This document shows, one piece after another, positions 4,059-60,849 of a stretch of DNA of 64,000 nucleotides. Source of the stretch: Monocercomonoides exilis PA203. Lineage: Eukaryota > Protista > Preaxostyla. Both the position numbers and the translations under genes were made by a program. The notes beneath the pieces are model-generated. The model had not been told where the DNA came from. It made no database searches and saw nothing but the letters and a program-made list of their open reading frames with translations. Numbering within the stretch: position 1 is the first letter of the stretch; each line of letters opens with the position of its first letter. The stretch is taken from NCBI GenBank assembly GCA_001643675.2, contig LSRY02000003.1, forward strand, positions 2,046,001-2,110,000, written 5' to 3'.

Positions 4059-5519
4059 TTATTCATATAATCTTTCAATGGAGAGGAAAATGAGAGGAGG
4101 AGGAGGAGGAGAGAAGGGGTGGAATATGATCAAGAGGCAAAAGAGGATAATTGTGAAGGTGAGTGCAGAGACTGTGAGGGAGCCCTGTGTTTGTTGGAAG
4201 AGAGCAGACGAGGCAGATGGATCAGGCGAAGAAGATGTTGATGATGATGAGGATGACGATGAAAATGATGATGCTGATTGTGATGACTGGGAATGTGAGT
4301 TTGATGGTTGAGGAATGCCACTGGAGGCGATGATGGTGGCAGTTGTGCCATTTCCAGTGATTTTTGTGTCAACCGCGCTGAAGGTGAGTGTTTGAGTTGG
4401 AACAAATGTTGAACTGAGGAGGGTGAGAGAGGCGTCTTGGAGGAGGGAAATGAAGCCGTTGAGGGCATACTCGATGGTGGCGCATGGGGTCTGTTGGGGC
4501 CTGCCACAGACATCGACATCAGTTCCGCTGTTAGAAACGATTTTGTTCTGGGCAATGAGGGGGAGCCAGCTATTATATTCAGCATTGTCAGCTGTATTGT
4601 TATTCCAGACTCTTTTTGTTAAAGTTGTTGATCCACAATTCTCAAATGGGGATTGGGTGATGCTGCTTCCATTGAAAAACACATCATTTCCTCTTCCATT
4701 TGTAGCCGTATTGCCATCGAAGAAACAAAATGTGATGAATTTTACTCCATTCATCCATGAATATGGTGGAAGGAAGCAAATTGCAGCACCACCATAATTG
4801 GCAGAGGCAGTCAATTTGTTGTTTATAAACTGGCAATCATTGATCAAAAACTGACTTGGTTTGTTATTTGGAGGATTATAAAATGTTAGAGAACCAGCAG
4901 AATCACCACCAGAATTTGAGATGCACTTGCATTTGGTGAAAAAGAATTGACCATTTGACGGAAAACCGCCAACATTAAAATACCAACCAGTTCCACACCA
5001 ATTTGTTATTGAACAACTTTCCACTCTGTTATCTGAGAATGAATAAACAGAATTTGATTGTGGATTGTAAACGAACACTGCTCCTCCATGCTTCGCTTGA
5101 CAACTTGTGAAATTGGATTTTGAAATATCAATTTTTAACAAAACATTGCAATACAACGCTCCTCCATGATCACTGGTTGAGCAATTGAAAAATGAGCAGG
5201 AAGTGATTGAGAGATTAGCATTTGTGCATTCTACATAAAGTGCTCCACCACGACTTGACCCACTGTTTGAATCATTCCATTCGCACCATTCGAATCTGTG
5301 GTTGTTCTCATCAAATGAAGTCAGTCTTCCAGGTTTCACTCTTTGAGATTCAGTTCCAACATGCACAACAGCAGCATTTGGTGAAGAGTGTGTTTGGTGG
5401 AGGAAAGATGTGTTGAAGGCAGAGAGAGAAGTGACAGGGCTGTTGAGGTTGGGGAGAATGGCACCATCGATGGGATTGTGAGTTGTGTGAATGAGAAAAT
5501 CAATATGAAAAGGGGAAAG
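4059..5519 (-). pseudogene. Beta-helix (GGA-repeat, Pmp/pectin-lyase-like) family copy A; 5'-truncated cassette with no in-frame ATG before the domain
   Basis: Repeats GGALYVEC/GGALYC/GGAVF/GGAAI, FxNC, FDGNTATNGRGNDVFF, then a CGRPQQTPCATIEYAL module. The frame opens only ~10 codons before THNPIDGAILPNLN, after an in-frame TAG. Confidence 0.7.
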
Positions 5520-6727: not shown

Positions 6728-8614
6728 ATGATCAATATTTACTTACCCAAAGAAATGAAAACATCCAAACATGCATCTGGCAATCCCATCTGTTGTGCTC
6801 AAACAAGCTTCGCCCTCATCAACACCTCCTTGTGTGTGACCCGTCTCAACATCATCCCTCTCAGCGGTTGTCCACTCCTCACTGCCCAACACCACTCCGC
6901 TGCCTCCATCTCCTCCTCCACTTGCACCATCCACCCACCTTCCCTCACCAACAACAACCACCACCACCACTGCCCCCTCTTCCTCTCTGCCCATGCCTCC
7001 GTCATCCTCACAAACTTCTCCCTCACCATCCATCAACCAGCCTTCCTCTCCTTCCCTCTCTTCTCCACCCCAAACAATCTCCTCCATAATGCCCACTCCC
7101 CAATCCCTGCCTCCTTCTCCATCTCCCGCTCCTCCTTCTCCTCCTTCATCTCCCTCATCCAGCCTTTCCTTTTTTCTCCTTCTTCCCTCTCTTCCCCATC
7201 CCCTTCTCCATCTCCTTCCCTTTCCCCTTCTCCTTCATCTTCCTCATCCTCATCCTCATCCTTATCCTCTTCTTTTTCTTCTCCTTCCCCATCCCTTTCT
7301 CCTTCCCTTTCCTCTTCCTCTTCCCCTCTCCATAACCATTACCAATCCCATCCCCACCTCCAAATCCACCTCCATCTCCATCTCTCAAACACCCTCTTCT
7401 CCAACATCTCCTCTCCCCAATCCCCTCTATCACTTCCATCTCTTCCTTCACACTCACTCAATCCTTTCATCTCAACCACCTCAACCACTTCCACTTCTAC
7501 CAATACCAACATCAATTCAATTCCCTCATTCTCCCTTCACTCATCCCTCTCCATCTACTCAACCATCTTTATTCACACTCACAATCCCATCGATGGTGCC
7601 ATTCTCCCCAACCTCAACAGCCCTGCCACTTCTCTCTCTGCCTTCAACACATCTTTCCTCCACCAAACACGTTCTTCATCAAATGGCCCTATTGTGCATG
7701 TTGGAAATGAAACCAACAGAAAGAGACCAGGAAGACTGACTTCATTTGATGCAAACAGCCATAAATTTGAATGGTGCGAATGGAACGATTCAAATGGAGG
7801 AAATGATTGGGGTGGAGCACTAAAAGTCAACTGCACTAATGCCAATCTCGCTATCACTTCTTGCTCATTTCACAATTGTTCATGTTCAGGTAATACTGCA
7901 GGTGGAGCGTTATGTTGTGATCGTTTGTTGAAAATCTCTCTCACAAAATCCAATTTCACAAGTTGTTCGGCCACTCATGGAGGAGCTGTTGTAATATATA
8001 CCCCACAATCAAATTCTGTTTATTCATTCTCAGATAACAGAGTGGAAAATTGCTCAATCACAAATTGGTGTGGAACTGGTTGGTATTTTAATGTTGGCGG
8101 TTTTCCGTCAAATGGTCAATTCTTTTTCACAAAATGCAAGTGCATCTCAAATTCTGGTGGTGATTCAACAGGTTCACTCACATTTTATTATCCTCCAACC
8201 AATAAACCAAATCAATTTTTGGTTAAAGATTGCCAGTTCATAAACAACAAAGTCGAAAATCCATCCTCCTACGGTGGTGCTGCGTTGTGCTGCACAAGAA
8301 CGTCAAATTGGATGAGCGGAAATAAATTCATCTCGTTTTGTTTCTTCGATGGCAACTCCGCCACAAATGGCAGAGGAAACGATGTGTTTTTCAATGGCAG
8401 TTCTATAGCCCAATCTCCATTCCAGCAATGCGGATCAACAACTCCAACACAAAGAGTGTGGAATGCAGGAACAGTTGAAAACACAGAGTATGTTGGCAGG
8501 TTTTGGCTTTTCCTTCAAAATTCTCCAATGAAATGTCTTTCTAACTTCCGTCTCTTATTTTTGCTTTCTCTATTTTCTCCTCTCCTTGCATTCTTTCTTT
8601 TCTCTCAAATTTGA
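6728..8614 (+). CDS. Beta-helix family copy B: Ser/Pro/His-rich leader, beta-helix domain and hydrophobic C-tail; lacks the signal peptide seen in copy D
   Basis: 628-aa ORF. Homology to copy D begins abruptly at HASGNPIC (~6768). Contains GGA/FxxC repeats. Confidence 0.7.
   Translation: MINIYLPKEMKTSKHASGNPICCAQTSFALINTSLCVTRLNIIPLSGCPLLTAQHHSAASISSSTCTIHPPSLTNNNHHHHCPLFLSAHASVILTNFSLTIHQPAFLSFPLFSTPNNLLHNAHSPIPASFSISRSSFSSFISLIQPFLFSPSSLSSPSPSPSPSLSPSPSSSSSSSSSLSSSFSSPSPSLSPSLSSSSSPLHNHYQSHPHLQIHLHLHLSNTLFSNISSPQSPLSLPSLPSHSLNPFISTTSTTSTSTNTNINSIPSFSLHSSLSIYSTIFIHTHNPIDGAILPNLNSPATSLSAFNTSFLHQTRSSSNGPIVHVGNETNRKRPGRLTSFDANSHKFEWCEWNDSNGGNDWGGALKVNCTNANLAITSCSFHNCSCSGNTAGGALCCDRLLKISLTKSNFTSCSATHGGAVVIYTPQSNSVYSFSDNRVENCSITNWCGTGWYFNVGGFPSNGQFFFTKCKCISNSGGDSTGSLTFYYPPTNKPNQFLVKDCQFINNKVENPSSYGGAALCCTRTSNWMSGNKFISFCFFDGNSATNGRGNDVFFNGSSIAQSPFQQCGSTTPTQRVWNAGTVENTEYVGRFWLFLQNSPMKCLSNFRLLFLLSLFSPLLAFFLFSQI
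7163..7591 (+). repeat. 429-nt G-free (C/T/A only) tract in the leader of copy B
   Basis: No G between 7162 and 7592. The tract ends inside the palindrome CCATCGATGG. Mirror 16991-17419 is C-free. Confidence 0.95.
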
Positions 8615-8939
8615 TAGTTATTTTTTTCTGAATCTTGTCATTCACCCTTGTTTGTTATATCGCTTCTCAAAATTACCCTCCGTTTATCCAAATACTTTTC
8701 TTCCCAAATTCAACATTCAACTCGAATCTCCTCTTCGAAACATCTTCTCTCTTTAATCCAAAAATCTCTTCAACCCTCTCAATCTCTTTTCCATTTATCA
8801 AATATCCAAAAACAGGATCTTATTTTTTCTTTCTCTTTCTCCTCTTCTTTCATTTTCTGTCATACTTTTTCCTCTCTTTCTTATTTCAGAATATTTCCTT
8901 CAGCGGCAAAAGTTCATCTTTTTCTTCATTTCATCATGA

Positions 8940-9195: not shown

Positions 9196-10151
9196 CCTCT
9201 CCATCCACTTAATCCCTCTTCCTCCACACCCACAACCCCATCGATGGCACCATTCTCCCCAACCTCAACAGCCCATCCACTTCCATCTCTGCCTTCAACA
9301 TTTCTTTTCTTCACCAAATACTCTCTTCACCAAATGATCTTGTAAGATATAACGGATCCGAAACTCAAAAATTGAAATTAGAAAGAATGTCCTCATTCAA
9401 CATGAATAGCTATCTCTTTGAATGGTGTGAATGGAATGATTCAAATGGTGGGTCAAGCGATGGAGGTGCACTTAAGGTTTATTGTGTCAATGCCAATCTC
9501 ACAATCACTTCTTGCTCGTTCAACAATTGTTCAACCACAGGAAATACTGTAGGTGGAGCATTATACAGTTACTGTTTGCAAAATGAGAATATTGCAAAAT
9601 CCAATTTCACAAGTTGTTCAGCTGCTCATGGAGGAGCAATTTGTATTGATGGACAACAATCATCTTCCGTTTATTCATTTTCTGATAACATGGTGGGAAA
9701 TTGTTCAATAACAAACTGGTGTGGAACTGGTTGGTATTTCTATATTGGTGATTTTTCTTCAAACGGTCAATTCCTGTTCACCAAATGCAAGTGTATTGCA
9801 AATTCTGGTAAAGATTCAACCGGCTCACTCACATTTCGCTGGCCTCCACAAAATAAACCAAATCAATTTTTGGTTAATGATTGTCAGTTCATCAATAACA
9901 ATCTGACTGCTTCTTCTTCTTATGGAGGCGCTGCTATTTATTATCATTCAACTTATTCCTGGATGAATGGAGTAAAATTCATCACATTCTGTTTTTTCGA
10001 TGGCAACACTGCAACAAATGGCAGGGGGAATGATGTGTTCTTCAGTGGTAATGCCATCACTCAATCTCCGTTTGAGAATTGTGGTTCAACAACCTCAACA
10101 CAAAGAATGTAGATTAATAAAACTGCAGATTATGAGACTTTCAACAGCTGA
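9181..10151 (+). pseudogene. Beta-helix family copy C; 5'-truncated with nonsense mutations
   Basis: Starts at the THNPIDG box. A 1-nt insertion gives an in-frame TAA at 9210. Conserved Trp codons are converted to TAG (10110) and TGA (10149). Confidence 0.85.
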
Positions 10152-12096: not shown

Positions 12097-12472
12097 AATT
12101 TTATTTCCAGTATTATCACACGAAAATACCTGGAATTTCGTATTTTTTTCCATACTGTAACTTTCATTTGTAACAGTTCTTTTTTTAATATTCAGATGAA
12201 TATAACCTTTTTATTAACGAATTCAAAAAAGATCAAACAATGATTTCATCAAACACTTTTTATAATTATGATTTTTAATGTTATTATTTTAGATAAAAAG
12301 TGTTTAATCATGGAAATTCTATTTGGATTCATAAAATATTGAATGAATTTCAAGAAAATCATTTTCATCTGAAAATGAAAAAAGGATAATTTCTTCACTT
12401 AATGACTTTTTTGTTATTAAATAAGGAATATCAGATATATTCAATAACAATAAAAAATAAAAATAAATAAAA
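12097..12472. other. Unique 376-bp AT-rich spacer (loop) of the palindrome
   Basis: Arm homology stops after CCATGGTG on each side. The spacer has no self-complementary counterpart apart from a short gapped TTTTATTT extension. Confidence 0.93.
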
Positions 12473-14429: not shown

Positions 14430-15400
14430 TCAGCTGTTGAAAGTCTCATAATCTGCAGTTTTATTAATCTACATTCTTTGTGTTGAGGTTGTTGAACCAC
14501 AATTCTCAAACGGAGATTGAGTGATGGCATTACCACTGAAGAACACATCATTCCCCCTGCCATTTGTTGCAGTGTTGCCATCGAAAAAACAGAATGTGAT
14601 GAATTTTACTCCATTCATCCAGGAATAAGTTGAATGATAATAAATAGCAGCGCCTCCATAAGAAGAAGAAGCAGTCAGATTGTTATTGATGAACTGACAA
14701 TCATTAACCAAAAATTGATTTGGTTTATTTTGTGGAGGCCAGCGAAATGTGAGTGAGCCGGTTGAATCTTTACCAGAATTTGCAATACACTTGCATTTGG
14801 TGAACAGGAATTGACCGTTTGAAGAAAAATCACCAATATAGAAATACCAACCAGTTCCACACCAGTTTGTTATTGAACAATTTCCCACCATGTTATCAGA
14901 AAATGAATAAACGGAAGATGATTGTTGTCCATCAATACAAATTGCTCCTCCATGAGCAGCTGAACAACTTGTGAAATTGGATTTTGCAATATTCTCATTT
15001 TGCAAACAGTAACTGTATAATGCTCCACCTACAGTATTTCCTGTGGTTGAACAATTGTTGAACGAGCAAGAAGTGATTGTGAGATTGGCATTGACACAAT
15101 AAACCTTAAGTGCACCTCCATCGCTTGACCCACCATTTGAATCATTCCATTCACACCATTCAAAGAGATAGCTATTCATGTTGAATGAGGACATTCTTTC
15201 TAATTTCAATTTTTGAGTTTCGGATCCGTTATATCTTACAAGATCATTTGGTGAAGAGAGTATTTGGTGAAGAAAAGAAATGTTGAAGGCAGAGATGGAA
15301 GTGGATGGGCTGTTGAGGTTGGGGAGAATGGTGCCATCGATGGGGTTGTGGGTGTGGAGGAAGAGGGATTAAGTGGATGGAGAGGGAGGAATTGGAGGAT
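14430..15400 (-). pseudogene. Copy C' (mirror of C)
   Basis: Identical 246-aa ORF 14469-15209 with the same stops. Confidence 0.85.
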
Positions 15401-15967
15401 CTTATTTGTCAAAAGAAAGCAGAAGAAAAGATGAAAAACCAGAAATTAACTATTTTTGCGAACATCTTCATTTTTGCTTGTCTTCATTTATCTTCACAAT
15501 TCTCAATCTTCAATCAACTCATTCTATTCATTTATCATCATCATCTTCTTCTTCTTCAACTTGTCAAAAACATATCATCCAACTTCTTCATCATCCACTT
15601 CATCAGATAAATTTCTTCACATTTGATATCTGCATCAGAGATCATGATGAAATGAAGAAAAAGATGAACTTTTGCCGCTGAAGGAAATATTCTGAAATAA
15701 GAAAGAGAGGAAAAAGTATGACAGAAAATGAAAGAAGAGGAGAAAGAGAAAGAAAAAATAAGATCCTGTTTTTTGGATATTTGATAAATGGAAAAGAGAT
15801 TGAGAGGGTTGAAGAGATTTTTGGATTAAAGAGAGAAGATGTTTCGAAGAGGAGATTCGAGTTGAATGTTGAATTTGGGAAGAAAAGTATTTGGATAAAC
15901 GGAGGGTAATTTTGAGAAGCGATATAACAAACAAGGGTGAATGACAAGATTCAGAAAAAAATAACTA

Positions 15968-17854
15968 TCAAATTTGAGAGAAAAGAAAGAATGCAAGGAG
16001 AGGAGAAAATAGAGAAAGCAAAAATAAGAGACGGAAGTTAGAAAGACATTTCATTGGAGAATTTTGAAGGAAAAGCCAAAACCTGCCAACATACTCTGTG
16101 TTTTCAACTGTTCCTGCATTCCACACTCTTTGTGTTGGAGTTGTTGATCCGCATTGCTGGAATGGAGATTGGGCTATAGAACTGCCATTGAAAAACACAT
16201 CGTTTCCTCTGCCATTTGTGGCGGAGTTGCCATCGAAGAAACAAAACGAGATGAATTTATTTCCGCTCATCCAATTTGACGTTCTTGTGCAGCACAACGC
16301 AGCACCACCGTAGGAGGATGGATTTTCGACTTTGTTGTTTATGAACTGGCAATCTTTAACCAAAAATTGATTTGGTTTATTGGTTGGAGGATAATAAAAT
16401 GTGAGTGAACCTGTTGAATCACCACCAGAATTTGAGATGCACTTGCATTTTGTGAAAAAGAATTGACCATTTGACGGAAAACCGCCAACATTAAAATACC
16501 AACCAGTTCCACACCAATTTGTGATTGAGCAATTTTCCACTCTGTTATCTGAGAATGAATAAACAGAATTTGATTGTGGGGTATATATTACAACAGCTCC
16601 TCCATGAGTGGCCGAACAACTTGTGAAATTGGATTTTGTGAGAGAGATTTTCAACAAACGATCACAACATAACGCTCCACCTGCAGTATTACCTGAACAT
16701 GAACAATTGTGAAATGAGCAAGAAGTGATAGCGAGATTGGCATTAGTGCAGTTGACTTTTAGTGCTCCACCCCAATCATTTCCTCCATTTGAATCGTTCC
16801 ATTCGCACCATTCAAATTTATGGCTGTTTGCATCAAATGAAGTCAGTCTTCCTGGTCTCTTTCTGTTGGTTTCATTTCCAACATGCACAATAGGGCCATT
16901 TGATGAAGAACGTGTTTGGTGGAGGAAAGATGTGTTGAAGGCAGAGAGAGAAGTGGCAGGGCTGTTGAGGTTGGGGAGAATGGCACCATCGATGGGATTG
17001 TGAGTGTGAATAAAGATGGTTGAGTAGATGGAGAGGGATGAGTGAAGGGAGAATGAGGGAATTGAATTGATGTTGGTATTGGTAGAAGTGGAAGTGGTTG
17101 AGGTGGTTGAGATGAAAGGATTGAGTGAGTGTGAAGGAAGAGATGGAAGTGATAGAGGGGATTGGGGAGATGAGATGTTGGAGAAGAGGGTGTTTGAGAG
17201 ATGGAGATGGAGGTGGATTTGGAGGTGGGGATGGGATTGGTAATGGTTATGGAGAGGGGAAGAGGAAGAGGAAAGGGAAGGAGAAAGGGATGGGGAAGGA
17301 GAAGAAAAAGAAGAGGATAAGGATGAGGATGAGGATGAGGAAGATGAAGGAGAAGGGGAAAGAGAAGGAGATGGAGAAGGGGATGGGGAAGAGAGGGAAG
17401 AAGGAGAAAAAAGGAAAGGCTGGATGAGGGAGATGAAGGAGGAGAAGGAGGAGTGGGAGATGGAGAAGGAGGCAGGGATTGGGGAGTGGGCATGTGAGAG
17501 GAGATTGTTTGGGGTGGAGAAGAGGGGGAAGGAGAAGATGGCAGGTTGGTGGGTGGTGAGGGAGAAGTTTGTGAGGATGACGGAGGCATGGGCAGAGAGG
17601 AAGAGGGGGCAGTGGTGGTGGTGGTTGTTGTTGGTGAGGGAAGGTGGGTGGATGGTGCAAGTGGAGGAGCAGATGGAGGCAGCGGAGTGGTGTTGGGCAG
17701 TGAGGAGTGGACAACCGCTGAGAGGGATGATGTTGAGACGGGTCACACACAAGGAGGTGTTGATGAGGGCGAAGCTTGTTTGAGCACAACAGATGGGATT
17801 GCCAGATGCATGTTTGGATGTTTTCATTTCTTTGGGTAAGTAAATATTGATCAT
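15968..17854 (-). CDS. Copy B' (mirror of B, with a divergent patch in the leader)
   Basis: 628-aa ORF that differs from B at ICSS/ISSS, TTHQPAIF/TIHQPAFL, LSHAH/LHNAH and ISHS/ISRS. Confidence 0.7.
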   Translation of the reverse strand: MINIYLPKEMKTSKHASGNPICCAQTSFALINTSLCVTRLNIIPLSGCPLLTAQHHSAASICSSTCTIHPPSLTNNNHHHHCPLFLSAHASVILTNFSLTTHQPAIFSFPLFSTPNNLLSHAHSPIPASFSISHSSFSSFISLIQPFLFSPSSLSSPSPSPSPSLSPSPSSSSSSSSSLSSSFSSPSPSLSPSLSSSSSPLHNHYQSHPHLQIHLHLHLSNTLFSNISSPQSPLSLPSLPSHSLNPFISTTSTTSTSTNTNINSIPSFSLHSSLSIYSTIFIHTHNPIDGAILPNLNSPATSLSAFNTSFLHQTRSSSNGPIVHVGNETNRKRPGRLTSFDANSHKFEWCEWNDSNGGNDWGGALKVNCTNANLAITSCSFHNCSCSGNTAGGALCCDRLLKISLTKSNFTSCSATHGGAVVIYTPQSNSVYSFSDNRVENCSITNWCGTGWYFNVGGFPSNGQFFFTKCKCISNSGGDSTGSLTFYYPPTNKPNQFLVKDCQFINNKVENPSSYGGAALCCTRTSNWMSGNKFISFCFFDGNSATNGRGNDVFFNGSSIAQSPFQQCGSTTPTQRVWNAGTVENTEYVGRFWLFLQNSPMKCLSNFRLLFLLSLFSPLLAFFLFSQI

Positions 17855-19066: not shown

Positions 19067-20527
19067 CTTTCCCCTTTTCATATTGATTTTCTCATTCACA
19101 CAACTCACAATCCCATCGATGGTGCCATTCTCCCCAACCTCAACAGCCCTGTCACTTCTCTCTCTGCCTTCAACACATCTTTCCTCCACCAAACACACTC
19201 TTCACCAAATGCTGCTGTTGTGCATGTTGGAACTGAATCTCAAAGAGTGAAACCTGGAAGACTGACTTCATTTGATGAGAACAACCACAGATTCGAATGG
19301 TGCGAATGGAATGATTCAAACAGTGGGTCAAGTCGTGGTGGAGCACTTTATGTAGAATGCACAAATGCTAATCTCTCAATCACTTCCTGCTCATTTTTCA
19401 ATTGCTCAACCAGTGATCATGGAGGAGCGTTGTATTGCAATGTTTTGTTAAAAATTGATATTTCAAAATCCAATTTCACAAGTTGTCAAGCGAAGCATGG
19501 AGGAGCAGTGTTCGTTTACAATCCACAATCAAATTCTGTTTATTCATTCTCAGATAACAGAGTGGAAAGTTGTTCAATAACAAATTGGTGTGGAACTGGT
19601 TGGTATTTTAATGTTGGCGGTTTTCCGTCAAATGGTCAATTCTTTTTCACCAAATGCAAGTGCATCTCAAATTCTGGTGGTGATTCTGCTGGTTCTCTAA
19701 CATTTTATAATCCTCCAAATAACAAACCAAGTCAGTTTTTGATCAATGATTGCCAGTTTATAAACAACAAATTGACTGCCTCTGCCAATTATGGTGGTGC
19801 TGCAATTTGCTTCCTTCCACCATATTCATGGATGAATGGAGTAAAATTCATCACATTTTGTTTCTTCGATGGCAATACGGCTACAAATGGAAGAGGAAAT
19901 GATGTGTTTTTCAATGGAAGCAGCATCACCCAATCCCCATTTGAGAATTGTGGATCAACAACTTTAACAAAAAGAGTCTGGAATAACAATACAGCTGACA
20001 ATGCTGAATATAATAGCTGGCTCCCCCTCATTGCCCAGAACAAAATCGTTTCTAACAGCGGAACTGATGTCGATGTCTGTGGCAGGCCCCAACAGACCCC
20101 ATGCGCCACCATCGAGTATGCCCTCAACGGCTTCATTTCCCTCCTCCAAGACGCCTCTCTCACCCTCCTCAGTTCAACATTTGTTCCAACTCAAACACTC
20201 ACCTTCAGCGCGGTTGACACAAAAATCACTGGAAATGGCACAACTGCCACCACCATCGCCTCCAGTGGCATTCCCCAACCACCAAACTCACATTCCCAGT
20301 CATCACAATCAGCATCATCATTTTCATCGTCATCCTCATCATCATCAACATCTTCTTCGCCTGATCCATCTGCCTCGTCTGCTCTCTTCCAACAAACACA
20401 GGGCTCCCTCACAGTCTCTGCACTCACCTTCACAATTATCCTCTTTTGCCTCTTGATCATATTCCACCCCTTCTCTCCTCCTCCTCCTCCTCTCATTTTC
20501 CTCTCCATTGAAAGATTATATGAATAA
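19067..20527 (+). pseudogene. Copy A' (mirror of A)
   Basis: 435-aa ORF (GTG start) 19220-20527. The frame is open from 19067, after a TAG at 19064. Confidence 0.7.
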
Positions 20528-48477: not shown

Positions 48478-49522
48478 TATTTTCTGTGAAAAGTTACTTC
48501 ACATTCAATCACAATAAAATATAGTCACAAAAAGGTGTGAATAACACGATGTGAAGATATCCGATTTTGGTTGTATTTGAAAAAAAGAGATTGCAACAGA
48601 ATGTTCATTTCATCAACTTCATGGAATCAATATTTAAACAGTTTTATAATTTTTATGATAAAAATAAAAATATGAGTCAAATTTTTTTGAAATTTTATTT
48701 GACAATAGAAAATGCTGATTCTTGAATTTTCGTTAAATATATATTGCTGAACGCTGAAAAATGATAATATAGAATTTTAAGAATTTTTTCACACATTCAT
48801 CTCGACAAATGGCTTTTGAAGCGATTGTTAAACATCAAATATATATGAAAGAAATTAATTTGACAAATAGCAAAAAAAGTTTTTAATAATCTTAGAACAG
48901 AATCAAGATGTGATTTTAACGATAATCACACGTATTAGAAAAGATAGTTGAACAAAAGTTATCAAATTTGTCATTTGCACAAAATGAAGAGACATTCTTT
49001 AATCAAATACAAAATCTATTCAAAAAAACAACAAATCATTTTTCTTGCAAGGTAATTGTAGTACACTGGAAAAATAACAACTTTTATTGATAAACTCGTT
49101 TGTCACTGTGAAGTTTTATCTCGTAACGATCACAATGATGGCTGTGTGGCAAATGCCAAATAAAATAGTCAAAGATGATATTTCAGATATTTTTAACTGA
49201 AACATTATCTTTCTGACTTTTACAGATCCAATTAACTCTGTTGAAATAACTGCTTCTTCGACTTCAAAAATGTTTGAAATGTGAAAATGAAAAATATCGA
49301 TTTTCAAGCTGTTTTTGAACAATGAATTAACACCTCACTTCTCAAAAAAATTATTTAATTAAAATGAAAAATCATGATTTTATCATCCATCCAATTCTGC
49401 TTATTGAAATTATTGTGAATTAAATTGTTGCTTGAAAACATTCAAAATACTTCAAAAGAAATAAAACCATAAAGAATTATGGTTATTTGCGAGGAGATAT
49501 GAAATTGCACTGCAGTTTGAAA

Positions 49523-51487
49523 ATGATTAGGATCACAGCATTAGCTCAAATACTCGTCGCATTCCTCACCATAAATCTCGTTCATGGAGAAGACATCGCA
49601 AACAGCATCATCAGAGGCGCTCACCCAGACAAGGTGGAACATGCATCTGGCAATCCCATCTGTGGTGCTCAGACAAGCCTCGCCCTCATCAACACCTCCT
49701 TGTGTGTGACCCATCTCAACATCATCCCCCTCAATGGTTGCCCACTCCTCACTGCCCAACACCACTCCGCTGCATCCATCTCCTCCTCCACTTGCACCAT
49801 CCACCCACTTTCCCTCACCAACAACCACCACCACCACCAATGCCCCCTCTTCCTCTCTGCCCATGCCTCCATCGCCCTCACAAACTTCTCCCTCATCACC
49901 CACCAACCAGCCTTCCTCTCCTTCCCCCTCTTCTCCACCCCAAACAATCTCCTCCCAGATCCCCACTCCCCAATTCCTGCCTCCTTCTCCGTCTCCCACT
50001 CCTCTTTCTCCTCCTTCATCTCCCTCATCCAGCCTTTCCTTTTTTCTCCTTCTTCCCTCTCTTCCCCATCCCCTTCTCCATCTCCTTCCCTTTCCCCTTC
50101 TCCTTCATCTTCCTCATCCTCATCCTCATCATCTTCTTTTTCTTCTCCTTCCACTTCCTCTTCCCCTTCCATTTCCTCTTTCTCTTCCCCTTCCCCTCTC
50201 CATATCCATCACCAATCCCATCCCCACCTCCAAATCCACCTCAATCTCCATCTCTCAAACACCCTCTTTTCCAACATCTCCTCTCCTCAATCCCATTCAT
50301 CTTTTCCATCTCTTCCTTCTCACTCACTCAACCCATTCACCTCAACAACCTCTTCCTCTTCTTCCACTTCCTCTTCCACCAACACCAACACCAATTCAAT
50401 CCCCTCCTTCTCCCTTCACTCATCCCTCTCCATCCACTCAACCATCTTCCTCCACACCCACAATCCCATCGATGGTGCCATCCTCCCCAACCTCAACAGC
50501 CCATTCACTTCTCTCTCTGCCTTCAATGCATCTTTCTTTCACCAAACACGCTCTTCATCGAACGCTGCTGTGGTGCATGTTGGAAATGAATCTCAAAGAG
50601 TGAAACTTGGAAGACTGACTTCATTCGATTTAGACAGCCATCGCTTTGAATGGTGCGAATGGGAAAACACAACTGGTGGGCCAGATCGAGGAGGAGCGCT
50701 TTATGTGGATTGTGCAAATGCTAATCTTGCAATCATATCGTGTTCATTCAACAATTGCTCGTGCAATTGGGATGGCGGAGCATTGTTTTGCAATAGTTCG
50801 TTGAAGTTAACCATCATGCAGTCCAATTTCACAAGTTGTTCAGCTAAATATGGAGGAGCGGTCACTTCATGGAATCCACAATCAAATTCTGCTTATTCAT
50901 TCTCGGAAAACAGAGTGGAAAGTTGTTCAATTTCAAATTGGTGTGGAACTGGTTGGTATTTCTTGCTAAATGACTTACCTGCATCTGGTCAATTCCTGTT
51001 TTCAAACAACAAATGTATTTCAAATTCTGGTGGTGATGCAGCTGGTTCTCTCACATTTCATTACCCTCCAACCAATAAGCCAAATCAATTTTTGGTTGAT
51101 GATTGCCAATTCATAAACAATAAAGTTGAAAATCCATCCTCCTACGGTGGTGCTGCGCTGTGTTGCACAGCAACTTATTCCTGGATGAGCGGAAATAAAT
51201 TCATCTCGTTTTGTTTCTTCGATGGCAACTCCGCCACAAATGGCAGAGGAAACGATGTGTTTTTCAATGGCAGTTCTATAGCCCAATCTCCATTCCAGCA
51301 ATGCGGATCAACAACCCCAACAAAAAGAGTGCATAATTACGGAACAGTTGAAAACTCAGAGTATGTTGGCAGGTTCTTGCTTTTCCTTCAAAATTCTCCA
51401 ATGAAATGTCTTTCTTACTTTCGTCTCTTATTTTTGCTTTCTCTATTTTCTCCTCTCCTTGCATTCTTTCTTTCCTCTCAAATTTGA
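49523..51487 (+). CDS. Beta-helix family copy D; the only copy with ATG, signal peptide, leader, domain and hydrophobic C-tail (654 aa)
   Basis: MIRITALAQILVAFLTINLVHG-EDI is signal-like. It is followed by the S/P/H leader, GGA repeats and the tail FRLLFLLSLFSPLLAFFLSSQI*. Confidence 0.8.
   Translation: MIRITALAQILVAFLTINLVHGEDIANSIIRGAHPDKVEHASGNPICGAQTSLALINTSLCVTHLNIIPLNGCPLLTAQHHSAASISSSTCTIHPLSLTNNHHHHQCPLFLSAHASIALTNFSLITHQPAFLSFPLFSTPNNLLPDPHSPIPASFSVSHSSFSSFISLIQPFLFSPSSLSSPSPSPSPSLSPSPSSSSSSSSSSSFSSPSTSSSPSISSFSSPSPLHIHHQSHPHLQIHLNLHLSNTLFSNISSPQSHSSFPSLPSHSLNPFTSTTSSSSSTSSSTNTNTNSIPSFSLHSSLSIHSTIFLHTHNPIDGAILPNLNSPFTSLSAFNASFFHQTRSSSNAAVVHVGNESQRVKLGRLTSFDLDSHRFEWCEWENTTGGPDRGGALYVDCANANLAIISCSFNNCSCNWDGGALFCNSSLKLTIMQSNFTSCSAKYGGAVTSWNPQSNSAYSFSENRVESCSISNWCGTGWYFLLNDLPASGQFLFSNNKCISNSGGDAAGSLTFHYPPTNKPNQFLVDDCQFINNKVENPSSYGGAALCCTATYSWMSGNKFISFCFFDGNSATNGRGNDVFFNGSSIAQSPFQQCGSTTPTKRVHNYGTVENSEYVGRFLLFLQNSPMKCLSYFRLLFLLSLFSPLLAFFLSSQI
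50033..50470 (+). repeat. 438-nt G-free tract in the leader of copy D
   Basis: No G between 50032 and 50471. The tract ends in CCATCGATGG. Confidence 0.95.
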
Positions 51488-52035
51488 TAGTTATTTTTTT
51501 CTGAATCTTGTCATTCATCCTTGTTTGCTATATCGCTTCTCAAAATTACCCTCTGTTTATCCAAATTCTTTCCTTCCCAAATTCAACATTCAACTCGAAT
51601 CTCCTCTTTGAAACATCTTCTCTCTTTAACCCAAAAATCTCTTCAATCCTCTCAATCTCTTTTCCATTTATCAATTATCCTAAAAATCAGGGATTTATTT
51701 TTCTTTCTCTTTCTCCTCTTCTTTCGTCTTCTTTCATTCTTCTTCTTCTCATTTTAATTTATGTAAATTTCCTTCAGCTGCAAAAGTTCATCTTTTTCTT
51801 CAATTCGTTCACGATCTCTGATGCAGATATCAAATTATAAGAAGTTCAAAATAGACGAAGTGAATGATGAAGTGGAAGAAGAATTTGAAGAAGAAGATGA
51901 TAATGAATGAATTGATAAGTTGATTGAAGGAGGAGAATGATGAAGATAAATAAATTAACAAATACCGAGATATTTGATTTTCCAATTTTTTCTGGTTTTT
52001 TTCTTTCATTTTTGTTTGTTTTTCTTACTAACAAA

Positions 52036-53095
52036 ATCCTCCAATTCAACCATCTTCCTCCACACTCACAACCCCATTGATGGAGCCATTCTCCCCAACT
52101 TCAACAGCCCATTCACTTCTCTCTCTGCCTTCAATGCCTCTTTTGTTCACCAAACACGTTCTTCATCAAATGCTGCAGAGGTGCATGTTGGAAATGAAAC
52201 TCACAGAAAATCACCTGGAAGATTGACTTCGTTTGATCTGAACAACCACAAATTTGAATGGTGCATATGGGAGAATTCAACTGGTGGTAGTGATCATGGA
52301 GGTGCACTTAAAGTTATTTGCACAAATGCAAATCTCACAATCACTTCTTGTTCATTTTTCAATTGTTCAAGTGGTGATCATGGTGGAGCATTGTATTGTA
52401 ATCGTTCGTTGAAGACTGTCATTACAAAATCAAATTTCACAAGTTGCTCAGCTGCTCACGGAGGAGCAAATTGCATTGCTAATCCACAATCAAATTCTGT
52501 TTGGACATTCTCAGAAAACAGAGTGGAAAATTGTTCAATAACAGATTGGTGCGGTACTGGATGGTTCTTTTACATTGGTGATTTTTCTTCAAACGGTCAA
52601 TTCCTGTTCACCAAATGCAAGTGCATTGCTAATTCTGGTGGTGATTCTGCTGGTTCTCTCACATTCAATTGGCCTCCACAAAACAAACCAAGTCAGTTTT
52701 CAATTAATGATTGCCAATTTATTAACAACGAATTGACTGCCTCTGCCAATTATGGAGGTGCTGCAATTTGCTTCCTTCCACCATATTCATGGATGAATGG
52801 AGTAAAATTCATCACATTCTGCTTTTTCGATGGAAATACTGCCAAAAATGGCAGAGGAAACGATGTGTTTTTCAATGGCAGTTCTATAGCCCAATCTCCA
52901 TTCCAGCAATGCGGATCAACAACTCCAACACAAAGAGTGTGGAATGCAGGAACAGTTGAAAACACAGAGTATGTTGGCAGGTTTTGGCTTTTCCTTCAAA
53001 ATTCTCCAATGAAATGTCTTTCTAACTTCCGTCTCTTATTTTTGCTTTCTCTATTTTCTCCTCTCCTTGCATTCTTTCTTTTCTCTCAAATTTGA
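52036..53095 (+). pseudogene. Beta-helix family copy E; 5'-truncated mosaic cassette with an intact frame but no ATG
   Basis: Begins atcctccaattc at the same junction as C and F. Its 3' 297 nt are identical to copy B. Confidence 0.65.
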
Positions 53096-56000
53096 TAGTT
53101 ATTTTTTTCTGAATCTTGTCATTCACCCTTGTTTGTTATATCACTTCTCAAAATTACCCTCCGTTCATCCAAATTCTTTTCTTCCAAAATCCAACATTCA
53201 ACTCAAACTTCGTATTCAAATATCTTCTTCTTTTCATTCAAAAAATCTCTTCAGCCCTCTCAATCTCATTTCCATCTAGCATGAATCCGAGATCAAGAAT
53301 TTCTTTCTCTTTCTTTTTCTTATTTTTATTTGTTATTTTTTCCTTCATTAATATATTTCCTTGTTTCCTTTTCATTTCTCTCTTAATCTCTGATGAAGAT
53401 GCAGAATGTGAAGAAAATCAATCAGATGATGTGAATGAAGAAGAAGAAGAAGAAGCTGTGTGAAATGTTGTTGATGTTTTTGAAGAAGAGGAAGATGATG
53501 ATAATGAATAAATGACATGAAATGTTTAATTGTTGAAAAGTGAGAAGATGAGTGTCAATTAATGCCAACCGAGAAATTCATTGAAATTCTCTTCTTCTGG
53601 ATTTTGTCTTCTTCTGGCAAATAATATCCTTTGAATTCATAGCAATTTCAATTTGATTCTTTCTCTCTTTCCATCTAAAAATATGAAATATTGAGCGATC
53701 CCTTTTTCATCCCATCTCTTCTTCTTTCACTTCCCTTCTTTCACAAAAAATCATCTTTCCTCAAACATAATTCTTTGTCAAAGCCCAATGCCAAGCATCT
53801 TCGAAATATCTCGCATTTCATCTGTCCTTCTTTATTCTTCCTTCCCAACTTTTCTTCTTTTTCTTCTTCAAAGCCACCTAATCCCTCATTCTTTCAGCAT
53901 TCTTTAAAAAAAAATAATAATAATTACTTCAAATAAATAACGACAGCAAACCTTCTAAACATATTTTAAAGTCAATAACTCTATTTTATCCAATTGGCAA
54001 CTGTTTCCCCTCAATAAAAATTCATTATTCCTTCCTTTTTCGAATGTTTCATCATCTGATTCGCAAATAATCCTTTCCAGAAGTCATTTCTTCATCAAAT
54101 GAATCGATTTCTTGCTCTTCTGAAAATGTGAAATTTTTGATTTCTGCTCAAATTCCATTCTCATCATTGAAAAATGTCCTGTTTTTCCTCTGAAAATATC
54201 ATCTCCAATTCCCTTCCCAAACCCTTCATCCTGGGCACTTTCCATATGAATTCGCTCTCCCAACTCGATAGTCACCCTGCACAACGAGATATAAACATTT
54301 CATTCATTTTCATTCTTTTCCGCCTCCTGCCCTGAAAGAAACACAAAAACATTCAACAGATAAATATTCATATAAAGAAAAATAAATAAATGTCAAACTG
54401 AACTTCGACTGTTTTTCGCCAAACACACTCATTTCCACAGCCATCATCATTCAAAAAATAAATCAATCTCTTTATTTCAGTCTCAGAATGGTTGAATACA
54501 GCATGGAATGCATCTCCTCAAAATACATTGTATGTCTCACTGGAGGGTCTTTTCAGTTCGAGCACATCGTGGTGGCTGTCCAGAGGTGTTTTTTCTGTTT
54601 TTGTCATGATCATCTCCTTTAATAATATTCTCAACCACCCAAAACAGTATTTGATGTCTATCTCATCAACACCAGGCACAGAAGTTATATGGTGCATACA
54701 AGTGATGGAAGAATATTTTTTGTGGAAGGGGGTGAGAGTTGAGTGGTTTTTTGAATGTTAATATTTCGAGAGGGGTTTTTGAATGAAAGAAAATCTGAGA
54801 CAAAGGGGTGGGGAAGAGCAGGTGGAAATTTGTAGAGGAAAATGTAGAAAATATATAGAGAAGTGATTGGGGATGATGAAGGAGGGCTTATTGTTGATTG
54901 GAGATATGGATTTTGAAAAGAAAGAAAAGAGGGCAAAAGTGTGCAAGAAGAAGAATATTCTGAAGTGTTTATATGAAAAGGGGGTAACTTTTATGAGAGG
55001 AGTAGATATTTTGGAAGAGATGGGGAAAGATGAAGAAAAGGAGGGGATTGATATTTTCTGATGATTTTGTGAGATGAATGGAAGATGGAAAATTGGAAAG
55101 GAATGGAAATTGAGATATATCTTCATTTTCTATTTTTGAGGGGAAAGGAGAGGAAATCGCAAAAAGAAAGTTTATTGCCTTTGAAGAAATACAGCAAGAT
55201 TGATTTCCACAATCTGTTTGTCACAAATATTGTGATTGAGTTTTTCAAGCCAATCTGAAGTTTATACATCAAATGAGACGTTTTGGCCAATCAACGACTT
55301 CATACAAATTATTCTCAACTTCATAAATATCGTTCGACTGTTTTCGCATTTCTCAACTGCATCTTCTTCTTCTCCATCTTCTTCTTCGTCGTCTTCTGAT
55401 AATTCTCCTTCATTCAATCGATCATCTTCCTCATTTCTCGGTTTACAAACACAAAATTCGCCTTCTCACAATTCACCTGTTTATTCAGCGACAAGCACGC
55501 CTGTTATGAATCGCATGGCCAAAAACACACAAAATCTTATTCATTCAAATATTGCTTCTTCTTCTTCTTCTTCAACTTCAACTTCATTCTTCCTCATTGA
55601 TTCGGACATTGAATCAGCATCTATCTTCATTTCAACAATTGTGTTCATCCTTTTCTTCTTCAACGCCTTCTTCGACGAATATCAAAAATATTCCTATTTC
55701 CATTTCATTCAGCTCCCCTCAAATTCATCAAGAGGCATTAAAATCTGCTCAAATAGGAAACGCAAAAGAAATGTTCATTCTGACATAGAATTTCAGCCAG
55801 ACCTAACACGGAGATGAAATGGGTAATATTGATCCAGAATAGCCGAGCATCAGGCATGCAACAGAAAATAGAGATTGCCTCTGACTTTTTTCATTTGGAA
55901 GCTGAAAGAATTCACCGAAAACATAAAGAACAGGACAGGATAGGATGTTTGGGACGAATGATTATGAGGATGACCTTCGACAAATTTCACAACGTCATTT

Positions 56001-56399: not shown

Positions 56400-57593
56400 T
56401 TATATGAGAACCTGAAAAAATTCATCATTTCCTGTGATTTTTGCATCAACTGCGCTGAAAGTGAGTGTTTGAAGAGGAACAAATGTTGAGGAAAGAAGAG
56501 TGAGGGAGGTGTCTTGGGCATCTGTCATGCGAACAAGAGCATGTTCTATTGTTTTGCATGGACTGAGTTGTGTGATTCCGCAGAGATCGGTGTTTGTCCC
56601 ATTATTTGACACGATTTTGAATGTTGTGACGAGAGGAAGCCATCTGTTGAACTCAACATCATCAGCAGTTCCTGCGTTCCACACTCTTTGTGTTGTGGTT
56701 GTTGATCCACACTGATTGAATGGAGATTGGGTGATGCTGCTGCCATTGAAGAACACATCATTTCCTCTTCCGTTTTTGGCAGTGTTGCCATCAAAGAAAC
56801 AGAATGTGATGAATTTGAACCCGCTCATCCAGGAATATGTTCTTGTGCAGCACAGCGCAGCACCACCGTAGGTGGTTGGATTTTCGACTTTGTTGTTGAT
56901 GAACTGGCACTCTTTGAGCAAATATTGAAGAGGCATTACTGGTGGAGGATAATTAAATGTGACTGCACCAGCCGCATCACCGCCAGTATTTGCGATGCTG
57001 ACACATTTCGAAAACAGGAATTGACCGTTTGATGTCATATTGTCAAGCACGATATCCCAACCAGTTCCAATGTTGCTACTTATTGAGCAATTATCCACTC
57101 GGTTTTCTGATAATACCCAAACAGAACTGGATTGGGGCCAGCCAACATAAGCAGCACCTGCATGTGCAGCTGAGCAACTTGTGAAATTGGATTTTACGAT
57201 GTTGACGTTTAATAAATATCTGCAAAACAACGCCCCGCCAACATCACCACTAGAACAATTGTCGAATGAACAAGAAGTGATTGTGAGATTTGCATCCACA
57301 CAATTAACATAAAGTGCACCGCCATATTCATTTCCACTGCTTGAATTTTCCCATATGCACCATTCGAAGCGATGGCTGTTAACATCGAATGAAGTCAGTC
57401 TTCCAGGTGATTTTCTGTGAGTTTCATTTCCTACATATACAACAGCAGCATTTGGTGAAGAGCGTGTTTGACTGAGAAAAGATGCATTGAAAGCAGAGAG
57501 AGAAGTGAATGGGCGATTGAGGTTGGGGAGGATGGAACCATCGATAGGGTTGTGAGTGTGGAGGAAGAGGGATGAATTGGAGGATCTTATTTG
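56400..57593 (-). pseudogene. Beta-helix family copy F; 5'-truncated cassette
   Basis: Frame open from the TGA at 57596-57594 through THNPIDGSILPNLN...FEWCIWENS...CGITQLSPCKTIEHAL...KITGNDEFFQVLI*. No upstream ATG. Confidence 0.7.
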
Positions 57594-57699
57594 TCAAAAG
57601 AAAGCAAAAGAAAAGATGAAAAATAAGAAAAGATCAACTTTTGCGAACATAAACGTTATTGTTTATCTTCATTTATCTTCGTAATTCTCAATCTTCAAT

Positions 57700-59484: not shown

Positions 59485-60849
59485 TTATAAAAAAATCAGA
59501 AAAACTTTATCATTTGAAATGATTTTTGTATCGACTGCTCTGAAGGTGAGTGTTTGAGTGGGAACAAATGTTGAGGTGAGGAGGGTGAGGGAGGCGTCTT
59601 GGAGGAGGGAGATGAAGCCAGTGAGGGCATACTCGATGGTGGCACATGGGGTCTGTTGGGGTCTGCCACAGACATCAGCATCAGTTCCATTGCTGGCAAC
59701 GATTTTGTTCTGGGCAATGAGGGGGAGCCAGCCATTGTACACTGCATTGTCAGCTGTTCCTGCGTTCCATACTCTTTTTGTTGGGGTTGTTGAACCACAA
59801 TTTTCAAACGGAGATTGTGTGATGCTACTGCCATTGAAGAACACATCATTTCCCCTGCCATTTTTGGCAGTGTTGCCATCAAAGAAGCAGAATGTGATGA
59901 ATTTATTTCCGCTCATCCAGGAAAAAGTTGAATAGAAGAAAATAGCAGCACCTCCATAATACGATGAATTTGTCAATTTATTATTGATGAATTGACAATC
60001 ATTTACTAAAAATTGATTTGGTTTATTTTGTGGAGGAGAATTGAATGTGAGAGAACCAGCAGAATCTCCTCCAGAGTTTGAGATGCACTTGCATTTGGAA
60101 AACAAGAATTGGCTTGCTGAGGTTATATTATACACATTAAAATACCAACCAGTTCCAATAGTACCATTTATTTTACAACCTTCAACTCTGTTATCTGAGA
60201 ATGAATAAACAGATGATGATTTTTGACCATCAATACAAATTGCACCTCCGCGAGTGGCAGAACAGTTTGTGAAGTTGGACTTAACGATGTTCACATTTGA
60301 CAAATATTTGCTGTATAATGCACCACCAGCATAATCGCCTGTGATCGAACATTTGCTGAATGAACAAGAAGTGATTGTGAGGTTGGCATTTTCGCAAACA
60401 ACTTTAAGAGCACCACCATAATCATTTTGTCCATTTGAATTATTCCACTCACACCATTCAAAAAGATAGCTATTCAATTCAGGAAAAGCCAATCTTCCAG
60501 GTTTCAATTTATGAGTTTCAGTTCCAATATGCTCAACAGGTTCATTTGGTGAAGAGCGTGTTTGGTGGAGAAAGGAAGTGTTGAAGGCAGAGAGAGAAGT
60601 GGATGGGTTGTTGAGGTTGGGGAGGATGGCACCATCGATGGGATTGTGGGTGTGGAGGAAGATGGTTGAGTGGATGGAGAGGGATGAGTGAAGGGAGAAG
60701 GAGGGGATTGAATTGGTGTTGGTGTTGGTGGAAGAGGAAGTGGAAGAAGAGGAAGAGGTGGTTGAGATAAAAGGATTGAGTGAATGTGAGGGAAGTGATG
60801 GAAGAGATGGATGGGATTGAGGAGAGGAGATGTTGGAGAAGAGGGTGTT
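59485..60849 (-). pseudogene. Beta-helix family copy G; 5'-truncated within the G-free leader
   Basis: An in-frame TAA (60852-60850) lies directly before NTLFSNISSPQSH. The domain is intact to ...KIISNDKVFLIFL*. Confidence 0.7.

Follow-up and report, generated by a model that had tools for sequence, protein, structure and literature searches.

The window analysed here is a 64,000-nucleotide (nt) stretch of the Monocercomonoides exilis PA203 genome, positions 2,046,001-2,110,000 of a contig that we call C25, in an assembly of 82.3 Mb in 101 contigs. It contains ten copies of one protein family (A, B, C, C', B', A', D, E, F, G), whose protein relatives are all named "uncharacterized protein MONOS_..." of M. 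exilis. We focus on copy E, a short open frame that shares a perfectly identical tract with copy B, and on what this tract suggests about exchange of sequence among the copies. The family copies and the tract, with coordinates counted from the first letter of the window, are as follows.

4059-5366, minus strand: copy A; mirror copy A' at 19220-20527, plus strand
6728-8614, plus strand: copy B, which carries a B-type tail; mirror copy B' at 15968-17854, minus strand
9372-10112, plus strand: copy C; mirror copy C' at 14469-15209, minus strand
49487-51487, plus strand: copy D, which starts like a signal peptide, continues through an N-domain and a stalk rich in Ser and Pro to the head, and ends in a pyrimidine-rich tail
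51974-53095, plus strand: copy E, open over 373 codons and spanning the head module
56400-57645, minus strand: copy F, with a stop inside its leader
59485-60741, minus strand: copy G, a further member of the family
52846-53142, plus strand: putative conversion tract in E, 297 nt, bounded by mismatches at 52845 and 53143
8365-8661, plus strand: the tract in B, the likely donor, identical to E at 297 of 297 positions
15921-16217, minus strand: the tract in B', the palindrome mirror of B, identical to the tract in E

The tract common to copies E and B

The initial annotation of this DNA described E as a mosaic whose 3' end is base-for-base identical to B while the two differ strongly upstream, and both statements hold. 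To the left of the tract, E and B agree at 76% of positions over 52046-52845 and at 63% over the last 145 nt; to the right, agreement is 81% over 53143-53300 and then 62%. The profile of E against B therefore runs from 63% to 100% (297 nt) to 81%, an island of identity within homologous, more divergent sequence. The island extends 47 nt beyond the stop at 53093-53095 that closes the open reading frame under translation table 11, and it takes in third codon positions, a pyrimidine-rich tail specific to the subfamily and the DNA past the stop. Across the genome, full identity over the tract occurs only in E, B and B'; D comes next at 95%, with 78 nt exact at 51238-51315, followed by further copies at 91% and 88%.

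Among nine B-type copies, the run shared by E and B comprises 87 consecutive polymorphic sites, whereas 10,000 permutations of the columns gave no pair a run above 36; this Sawyer-type permutation test, which follows the logic of GENECONV, gives a global p <= 1e-4. In a broader core alignment of 37 copies, where the end of the core shortens the E-B run, this run and another between E and the copy at C25:2035047 both exceed the 95% global threshold, and fragments longer than in every permutation involve 17 of the 37 copies.

Trees built from successive segments, a check that the initial annotation had suggested, are not congruent, as the sister group of E differs in all three. E groups with C25:2352028/2344834/2283456 over 52046-52570 (Shimodaira-Hasegawa-like approximate likelihood ratio test, SH-aLRT, 95), with C25:2035047 and the A pair over 52571-52845 (SH-aLRT 90), and with B over 52846-52945. 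For the middle segment, the approximately unbiased (AU) test rejects both a clade of E and B (p = 0.012) and the grouping seen in the 5' segment (p = 0.005). For the 5' segment (52046-52570) it does not reject a clade of E and B (p = 0.40), which probably reflects that this segment is itself a fine mosaic.

Sources of E and patchwork across the family

Apart from the B tract, several stretches of E can be assigned to other copies:

52046-52540, plus strand: the 5' half of E, older and composed of short patches, with exact blocks of 49-55 nt shared with copies on contigs C7 and C25
52574-52695, plus strand: exact match of 122 nt to C25:2035578-2035699, about 63 kb upstream of E and outside the window
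52708-52838, plus strand: A-type stretch, in which E agrees with A over B at 43 consecutive informative sites
53109-53204, plus strand: exact match of 96 nt in the 3' flank to C25:2155572-2155667, sharing 34 nt with the end of the B tract

Exact-match blocks of at least 30 nt, found by comparison with about 50 other copies, cover 84% of 52046-53142, and a copying model that could draw on 36 other copies breaks E up into 17-30 pieces, so that the "four-way mosaic" first proposed undercounts its sources. The peptides on which that count was based do match F, C and A as written, but at the DNA level nothing singles out the F-like piece: F does not stand above several other copies, and in three consecutive blocks of 100 nt along the 5' part of E the informative sites favoring F and B number 10:8, 11:9 and 14:13. 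Copy C, put forward as the donor of the middle part, does match 50 nt exactly (52574-52623), but this lies within the 122-nt piece that the copy outside the window matches in full. The A-type stretch has a 62-nt exact core (52757-52818) that is shared with A (4729-4790, minus strand), A' (19796-19857, plus strand) and C25:2030355-2030416. For the 5' half, the best identity anywhere in the genome is 86-88%. The exchanges had also been called recent, a term that is justified for the B tract, which has zero differences, and for the 122-nt tract, and for those two only; the best candidates for recent donors of E are B or B' and the copy about 63 kb upstream.

The switch from A-type to B-type sequence in E falls between 52838 and 52843 and is clean in the string of informative sites; E has private bases at 52840 and 52845, beside the left edge of the tract. 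This junction adjoins the most conserved head motif of the family, in line with the earlier suggestion that crossover points lie in invariant framework motifs. As a general rule the suggestion is not supported: 179 switch points inferred in 36 copies show no enrichment over a uniform-breakpoint null (interval 7.3 nt vs. 10.1 nt expected; conservation 0.860 vs. 0.868) in a test that is noisy, as the true donors are not in the panel.

E is not the only mosaic. The likelihood of the copying model is far above that for column-shuffled data in all 12 copies tested. In the coordinates of E, B is A-like over 52546-52645 (26 informative sites to 1) and D-like afterwards, and D resembles C25:2346418 over 52246-52445 (57 to 1) and B further on. 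Other patchwork pointed out by the initial annotation was largely recovered. A' (19523-19686) and B (8003-8166) differ at only 4 of 164 nt between flanks of 68-70% identity, and a stretch said to be common to B and D is indeed shared by them; G, described as C-like in its 5' part and A-like in its 3' part, is C-like in parts of the core only, and its A-like 3' sequence falls outside the aligned region.

Exchange also shows an effect of distance, confined to the longest fragments. With pairs that involve E excluded, a significantly long fragment is shared by 14 of the 95 pairs with less than 100 kb between them, in contrast to 20 of 500 pairs that are farther apart (Fisher p = 2.5e-4; label permutation reaches the observed value in 5 of 5000 trials). 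The rank correlation between distance and tract length is null (rho -0.04), which leaves only the tail of long fragments dependent on distance, and overall agreement between copies is flat at 0.64-0.66 whatever the distance. Significant fragments link short copies with each other in 43 of 780 pairs and short copies with long-type heads in 6 of 280 pairs, the latter figure being based on seven long-type heads. Since long-type heads and short copies have such fragments in common, the full-length genes described below belong to the same exchange network: head-only fragments in one megabase exchange among themselves and, less often, with full-length genes.

As assembled, the mirror copies of the window lie in a palindrome at 1-24584, whose arms are 98-100% identical, with a center near 12285 and innermost arms 376 nt apart. 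It duplicates A, B, C and part of an IQCH-like gene in mirror orientation, and the start of the window cuts its left arm. The assembly of C25 contains more mirrored pairs of copies, for example 1584362/1587948, 1496560/1502181 and 1690392/1697833, and these structures may be genuine or may stem from fold-back errors of assembly; a mirrored pair on a small contig (C98:4160-8627) is nearly identical to C25:1584362-1588853, and that contig may be a haplotig or redundant. Genes from outside the family are interspersed among the copies of the window and encode the IQCH-like protein, an S41-peptidase-like protein and a 4876-amino acid (aa) open frame that, judged by eye, reads as a dynein heavy chain.

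Predicted beta-helix heads, receptor-like kinases and coding state

The head is predicted to be a right-handed parallel beta-helix. An AlphaFold2 model of the head of E (264 aa) is an all-beta solenoid with a predicted local distance difference test score (pLDDT) of 84.8 and a predicted template-modelling score (pTM) of 0.86, and VIA-align superposes 187-236 of its residues on tailspikes, alginate epimerases and pectate lyases at Z 14.5-18.5. The fold is evident only with an exhaustive structural aligner, as a Foldseek search of the PDB with the same model returned nothing at E <= 0.001. In Pfam, the heads of five copies have no match at E <= 1, Chlam_PMP and DUF1565 (PF02415, PF07602) included; language-model features did indicate Chlam_PMP / DUF1565 at 0.93, which we take as a lead only.

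A protein-level search of the genome gave 1979 first-look candidates for heads, 111 of which were scored; at the DNA level, the first-look candidates numbered 366-534. Inside C25:1.49-2.51 Mb, nearly all head frames are 340-800 aa long and kinase-less; outside this interval, many heads sit in open frames of 2000-3086 aa that are spread over many contigs. The window lies within a cluster of about 1 Mb of short, kinase-less head fragments, at least dozens and possibly hundreds in number. One full-length member, the only one taken apart, shows how the head is placed in the longer proteins:

L077:232-9348 (C25:980231-989347): full-length member, 3039 aa

From its hydrophobic N-terminus it passes through an N-domain and a Ser-rich stalk to the head at about residues 400-700 and a long ectodomain, followed by a single hydrophobic 21-mer from residue 2583 and a kinase match (PF07714, residues 2888-2986, E = 1.1e-9) that is above the curated cut-off and covers the kinase C-lobe only. 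This layout suggests that the full-length members are receptor-like kinases of about 2000-3086 aa, in which a signal peptide and a very large beta-helix ectodomain precede a single transmembrane helix and a kinase domain. The unannotated "cassettes" of the window thus represent partial copies of the membrane-distal head of such kinases, their outer predicted beta-helix. The two genome papers count 332 tyrosine-kinase-like genes, more than in any other gene family of the species, and mention that such kinases overlap with unclassified repeats (PMC6759080, PMC8767320). The receptor-like kinases identified here may be part of this expansion; term searches of both papers gave nothing on ectodomains, head fragments or gene conversion.

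The head of E is open throughout, without an internal stop, and is preceded by no in-frame ATG: after a stop at 51956-51958 comes a TTG at 51974, and ATG first occurs in frame at codon 262. E is not among the annotated proteins of the public proteome, and RNA contigs are absent from the E-specific bins of the contigs from public runs. The leader upstream of the head is highly variable between copies. The 5' end of D looks complete, and F is annotated only in its 3' part (56400-57299), as a 212-aa model (P0022) from an internal ATG, with homology that extends to 57645 and a stop in the leader. The B-type tail (52973-53095, 8492-8614 and 51365-51487) ends in about 20 hydrophobic residues, which could be a membrane-anchor signal or merely translated pyrimidine-rich non-coding DNA, as such DNA stays open by composition alone. 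One RNA contig (run X5) continues from this tail into a 3' flank of B type, which hints weakly at transcription of some B-type copy. Ahead of the heads of B and D, Ser/Pro-rich frames (6728-7700 and 49487-50540) lie on a pyrimidine-rich strand with GC skew down to -0.48 and several frames open. Public gene models read such stretches in differing frames (cf. P0003 and P0004), and annotation of the family is therefore unreliable.

Probable gene conversion, alternative histories and comparable systems

The flanks of the tract bear on the kind of event and its direction. In E, the tract is foreign to the sequence on both sides: the copy closest to the 3' flank (53143-53450) is C25:1978417 (87-92%) and not B, with the lower values given above. 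This argues for non-crossover conversion, and the tract reads as a non-crossover island rather than as the product of a crossover. B compared to D is smooth across the same region, at 90%, 95% and 92%, which suggests that the tract is native to B, with B or B' as donor and E as recipient.

Taken as a whole, we consider the following account likely. E would be a kinase-less, start-less fragment of the N-terminal beta-helix head of an M. exilis receptor-like kinase family, and its patchwork would have arisen by repeated short-tract ectopic (interlocus) gene conversion between paralogous heads. In the latest event, E would have received some 297-305 nt from B, at a distance of 44 kb, or from B', at 36 kb, with its flanks left unexchanged. 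Mechanistically, a break in a head copy may be repaired by homologous recombination with a nearby paralogue as template, which would yield non-crossover tracts of 50-300 nt that match those seen. Such a mechanism fits M. exilis, since the genome report describes it as lacking non-homologous end joining and having a fairly complete homologous-recombination pathway (PMC6759080); from this we infer homologous-recombination repair as the mechanism. Conversion may also have a role in diversifying receptor heads. Of the initial annotation, the observation that E is mosaic is confirmed, and its interpretation is supported in part: segmental gene conversion is well supported by the identity island, the permutation test, the conflicting segment trees and the AU test together, in contrast to the number of sources and the placement of breakpoints.

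Several points weigh against this account. The donor panel held about 50 of at least several hundred copies, picked by similarity to E, which makes the figures for the family-wide patchwork and its dependence on distance indicative only. The data by themselves fix the identity of the tract, and its direction of transfer is our inference from the flanks. For the assembly, Canu was followed by Nanopolish and by Pilon, run ten times with 2x300 reads, and the authors caution about multi-copy regions (PMC8767320). No contig from public runs (Logan, 70-190 nt) extends across 52846 or 53142 by 31 nt or more in both directions, and the k-mer depth of the tract is about 3-4 times that of single-copy sequence, with some figures that fit three genomic copies and others two.

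One alternative is that the tract is an artefact, in which reads of B or B' were mis-mapped onto E during polishing with Nanopolish and Pilon and overwrote its 3' end. The polishing history and the authors' warning are compatible with this, as are the length of the tract, 297 nt, close to the 300-nt read length, and the lack of a junction-spanning record among the public contigs. However, the tract ends sharply on either side and E keeps its private differences at 52840 and 52845, while short E-specific contigs occur without mismatch in runs of 2016 and 2022, the former from independent libraries, and the tract shows no alternative letters. An artefact of this kind would also have to account for the rest of the family, where older tracts with later substitutions go beyond what polishing makes, exact shared tracts are continuous in length from 50 to 240 nt without a peak at read length, and long tracts vary with genomic distance, which is unexpected for mis-mapping. 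In addition, a protein present only in an older annotation set, which seems to derive from an earlier, independent assembly, has a 100% match of 368 aa in a single copy of the cluster, with the next best at 79%. We therefore regard an artefact as improbable.

A different history of the same sequences is slightly easier to entertain, though still unlikely: E could be a recent B-type duplicate that was overwritten outside 52846-53142, or E could be the donor and B the recipient. E, B and D do have the B-type tail and a homologous 3' flank in common, and identity carries no direction of its own. Yet B is D-like on either side of the tract (90% and 92%), which indicates its native context, both flanks of E come from other lineages, and overwriting them would require at least two extra events instead of one; either variant would still be gene conversion, with another history. 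That there was no exchange, and that purifying selection kept a strongly conserved tract identical, has next to no probability. The tract does begin at the protein motif that is most conserved in the head, but in this region the difference between E and other copies is 5-28%, third codon positions, the pyrimidine-rich tail and the 47 nt past the stop are all part of the identity, and E equals B at all 87 sites that vary among B-type copies. Conversion from B or B' into E thus remains the account that we prefer, and the reported absence of end joining, with the repair by homologous recombination that would follow from it, offers a simple reason for patchwork as pervasive as that seen here.

Ectopic gene conversion is textbook knowledge for multigene families, which makes the mechanism an ordinary one; the setting, a family of receptor-kinase heads in M. 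exilis, is undescribed. In plants, clustered paralogues of solenoid receptors exchange sequence, as in the Cf-4/9 receptor-like proteins of tomato and the Xa21-type receptor kinases of rice. The M. exilis family resembles these in its clustered paralogues, repeat-solenoid ectodomain, interlocus patchwork and truncated members beside full-length receptor kinases or receptor-like proteins. It differs in that the solenoid is a predicted right-handed beta-helix and not made of leucine-rich repeats, and in that the organism is an amitochondriate gut flagellate with a very large fragment cluster, in which dozens of copies were scored within about 1 Mb and candidates run into the hundreds. The predicted right-handed parallel beta-helix, with motifs of the GGA type and others resembling F-x-x-N, is shared with polymorphic membrane proteins of chlamydiae and with bacterial DUF1565/PbH1 proteins, whereas the heads of M. 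exilis are eukaryotic, Cys-rich, fused to kinases and without a Pfam match. Another comparison is with Entamoeba histolytica, a gut protist whose transmembrane kinases (TMK) are a large family of single-pass receptor-like kinases with Cys-rich, variable ectodomains. Both protists have many such kinases, with ectodomain repeats of another type in TMK, and we know of no report of a megabase cluster of kinase-less head fragments for E. histolytica.

Segmental gene conversion is also described for variant surface families of protists, namely Babesia ves1 (PMC4066756), the Gal/GalNAc lectin genes of Entamoeba (PMC3125142), the mosaic VSGs of Trypanosoma brucei and the VSPs of Giardia. M. exilis is similar in having a large, lineage-specific, Cys-rich family of predicted surface proteins, short-tract mosaics and incomplete copies as potential donors. 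Unlike those families, its full-length proteins have a cytoplasmic kinase, which suggests sensing over a coat, and an expression site, mutually exclusive expression and switching are not in evidence; M. exilis is, moreover, regarded as a commensal. A tentative and rather doubtful extension of the comparison is that the cluster of about 1 Mb on C25, with its mostly start-less heads in open frames, is a maintained archive from which short-tract conversion re-assorts the heads of full-length receptors. If true, this would be pseudogene-templated diversification of sensors in a commensal protist, akin to the VSG mosaics or to conversion from pseudogenes in chicken immunoglobulin genes, and fragments that feed expressed receptors would make M. 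exilis a tractable case of templated receptor diversification beyond animals, plants and the classical parasites.

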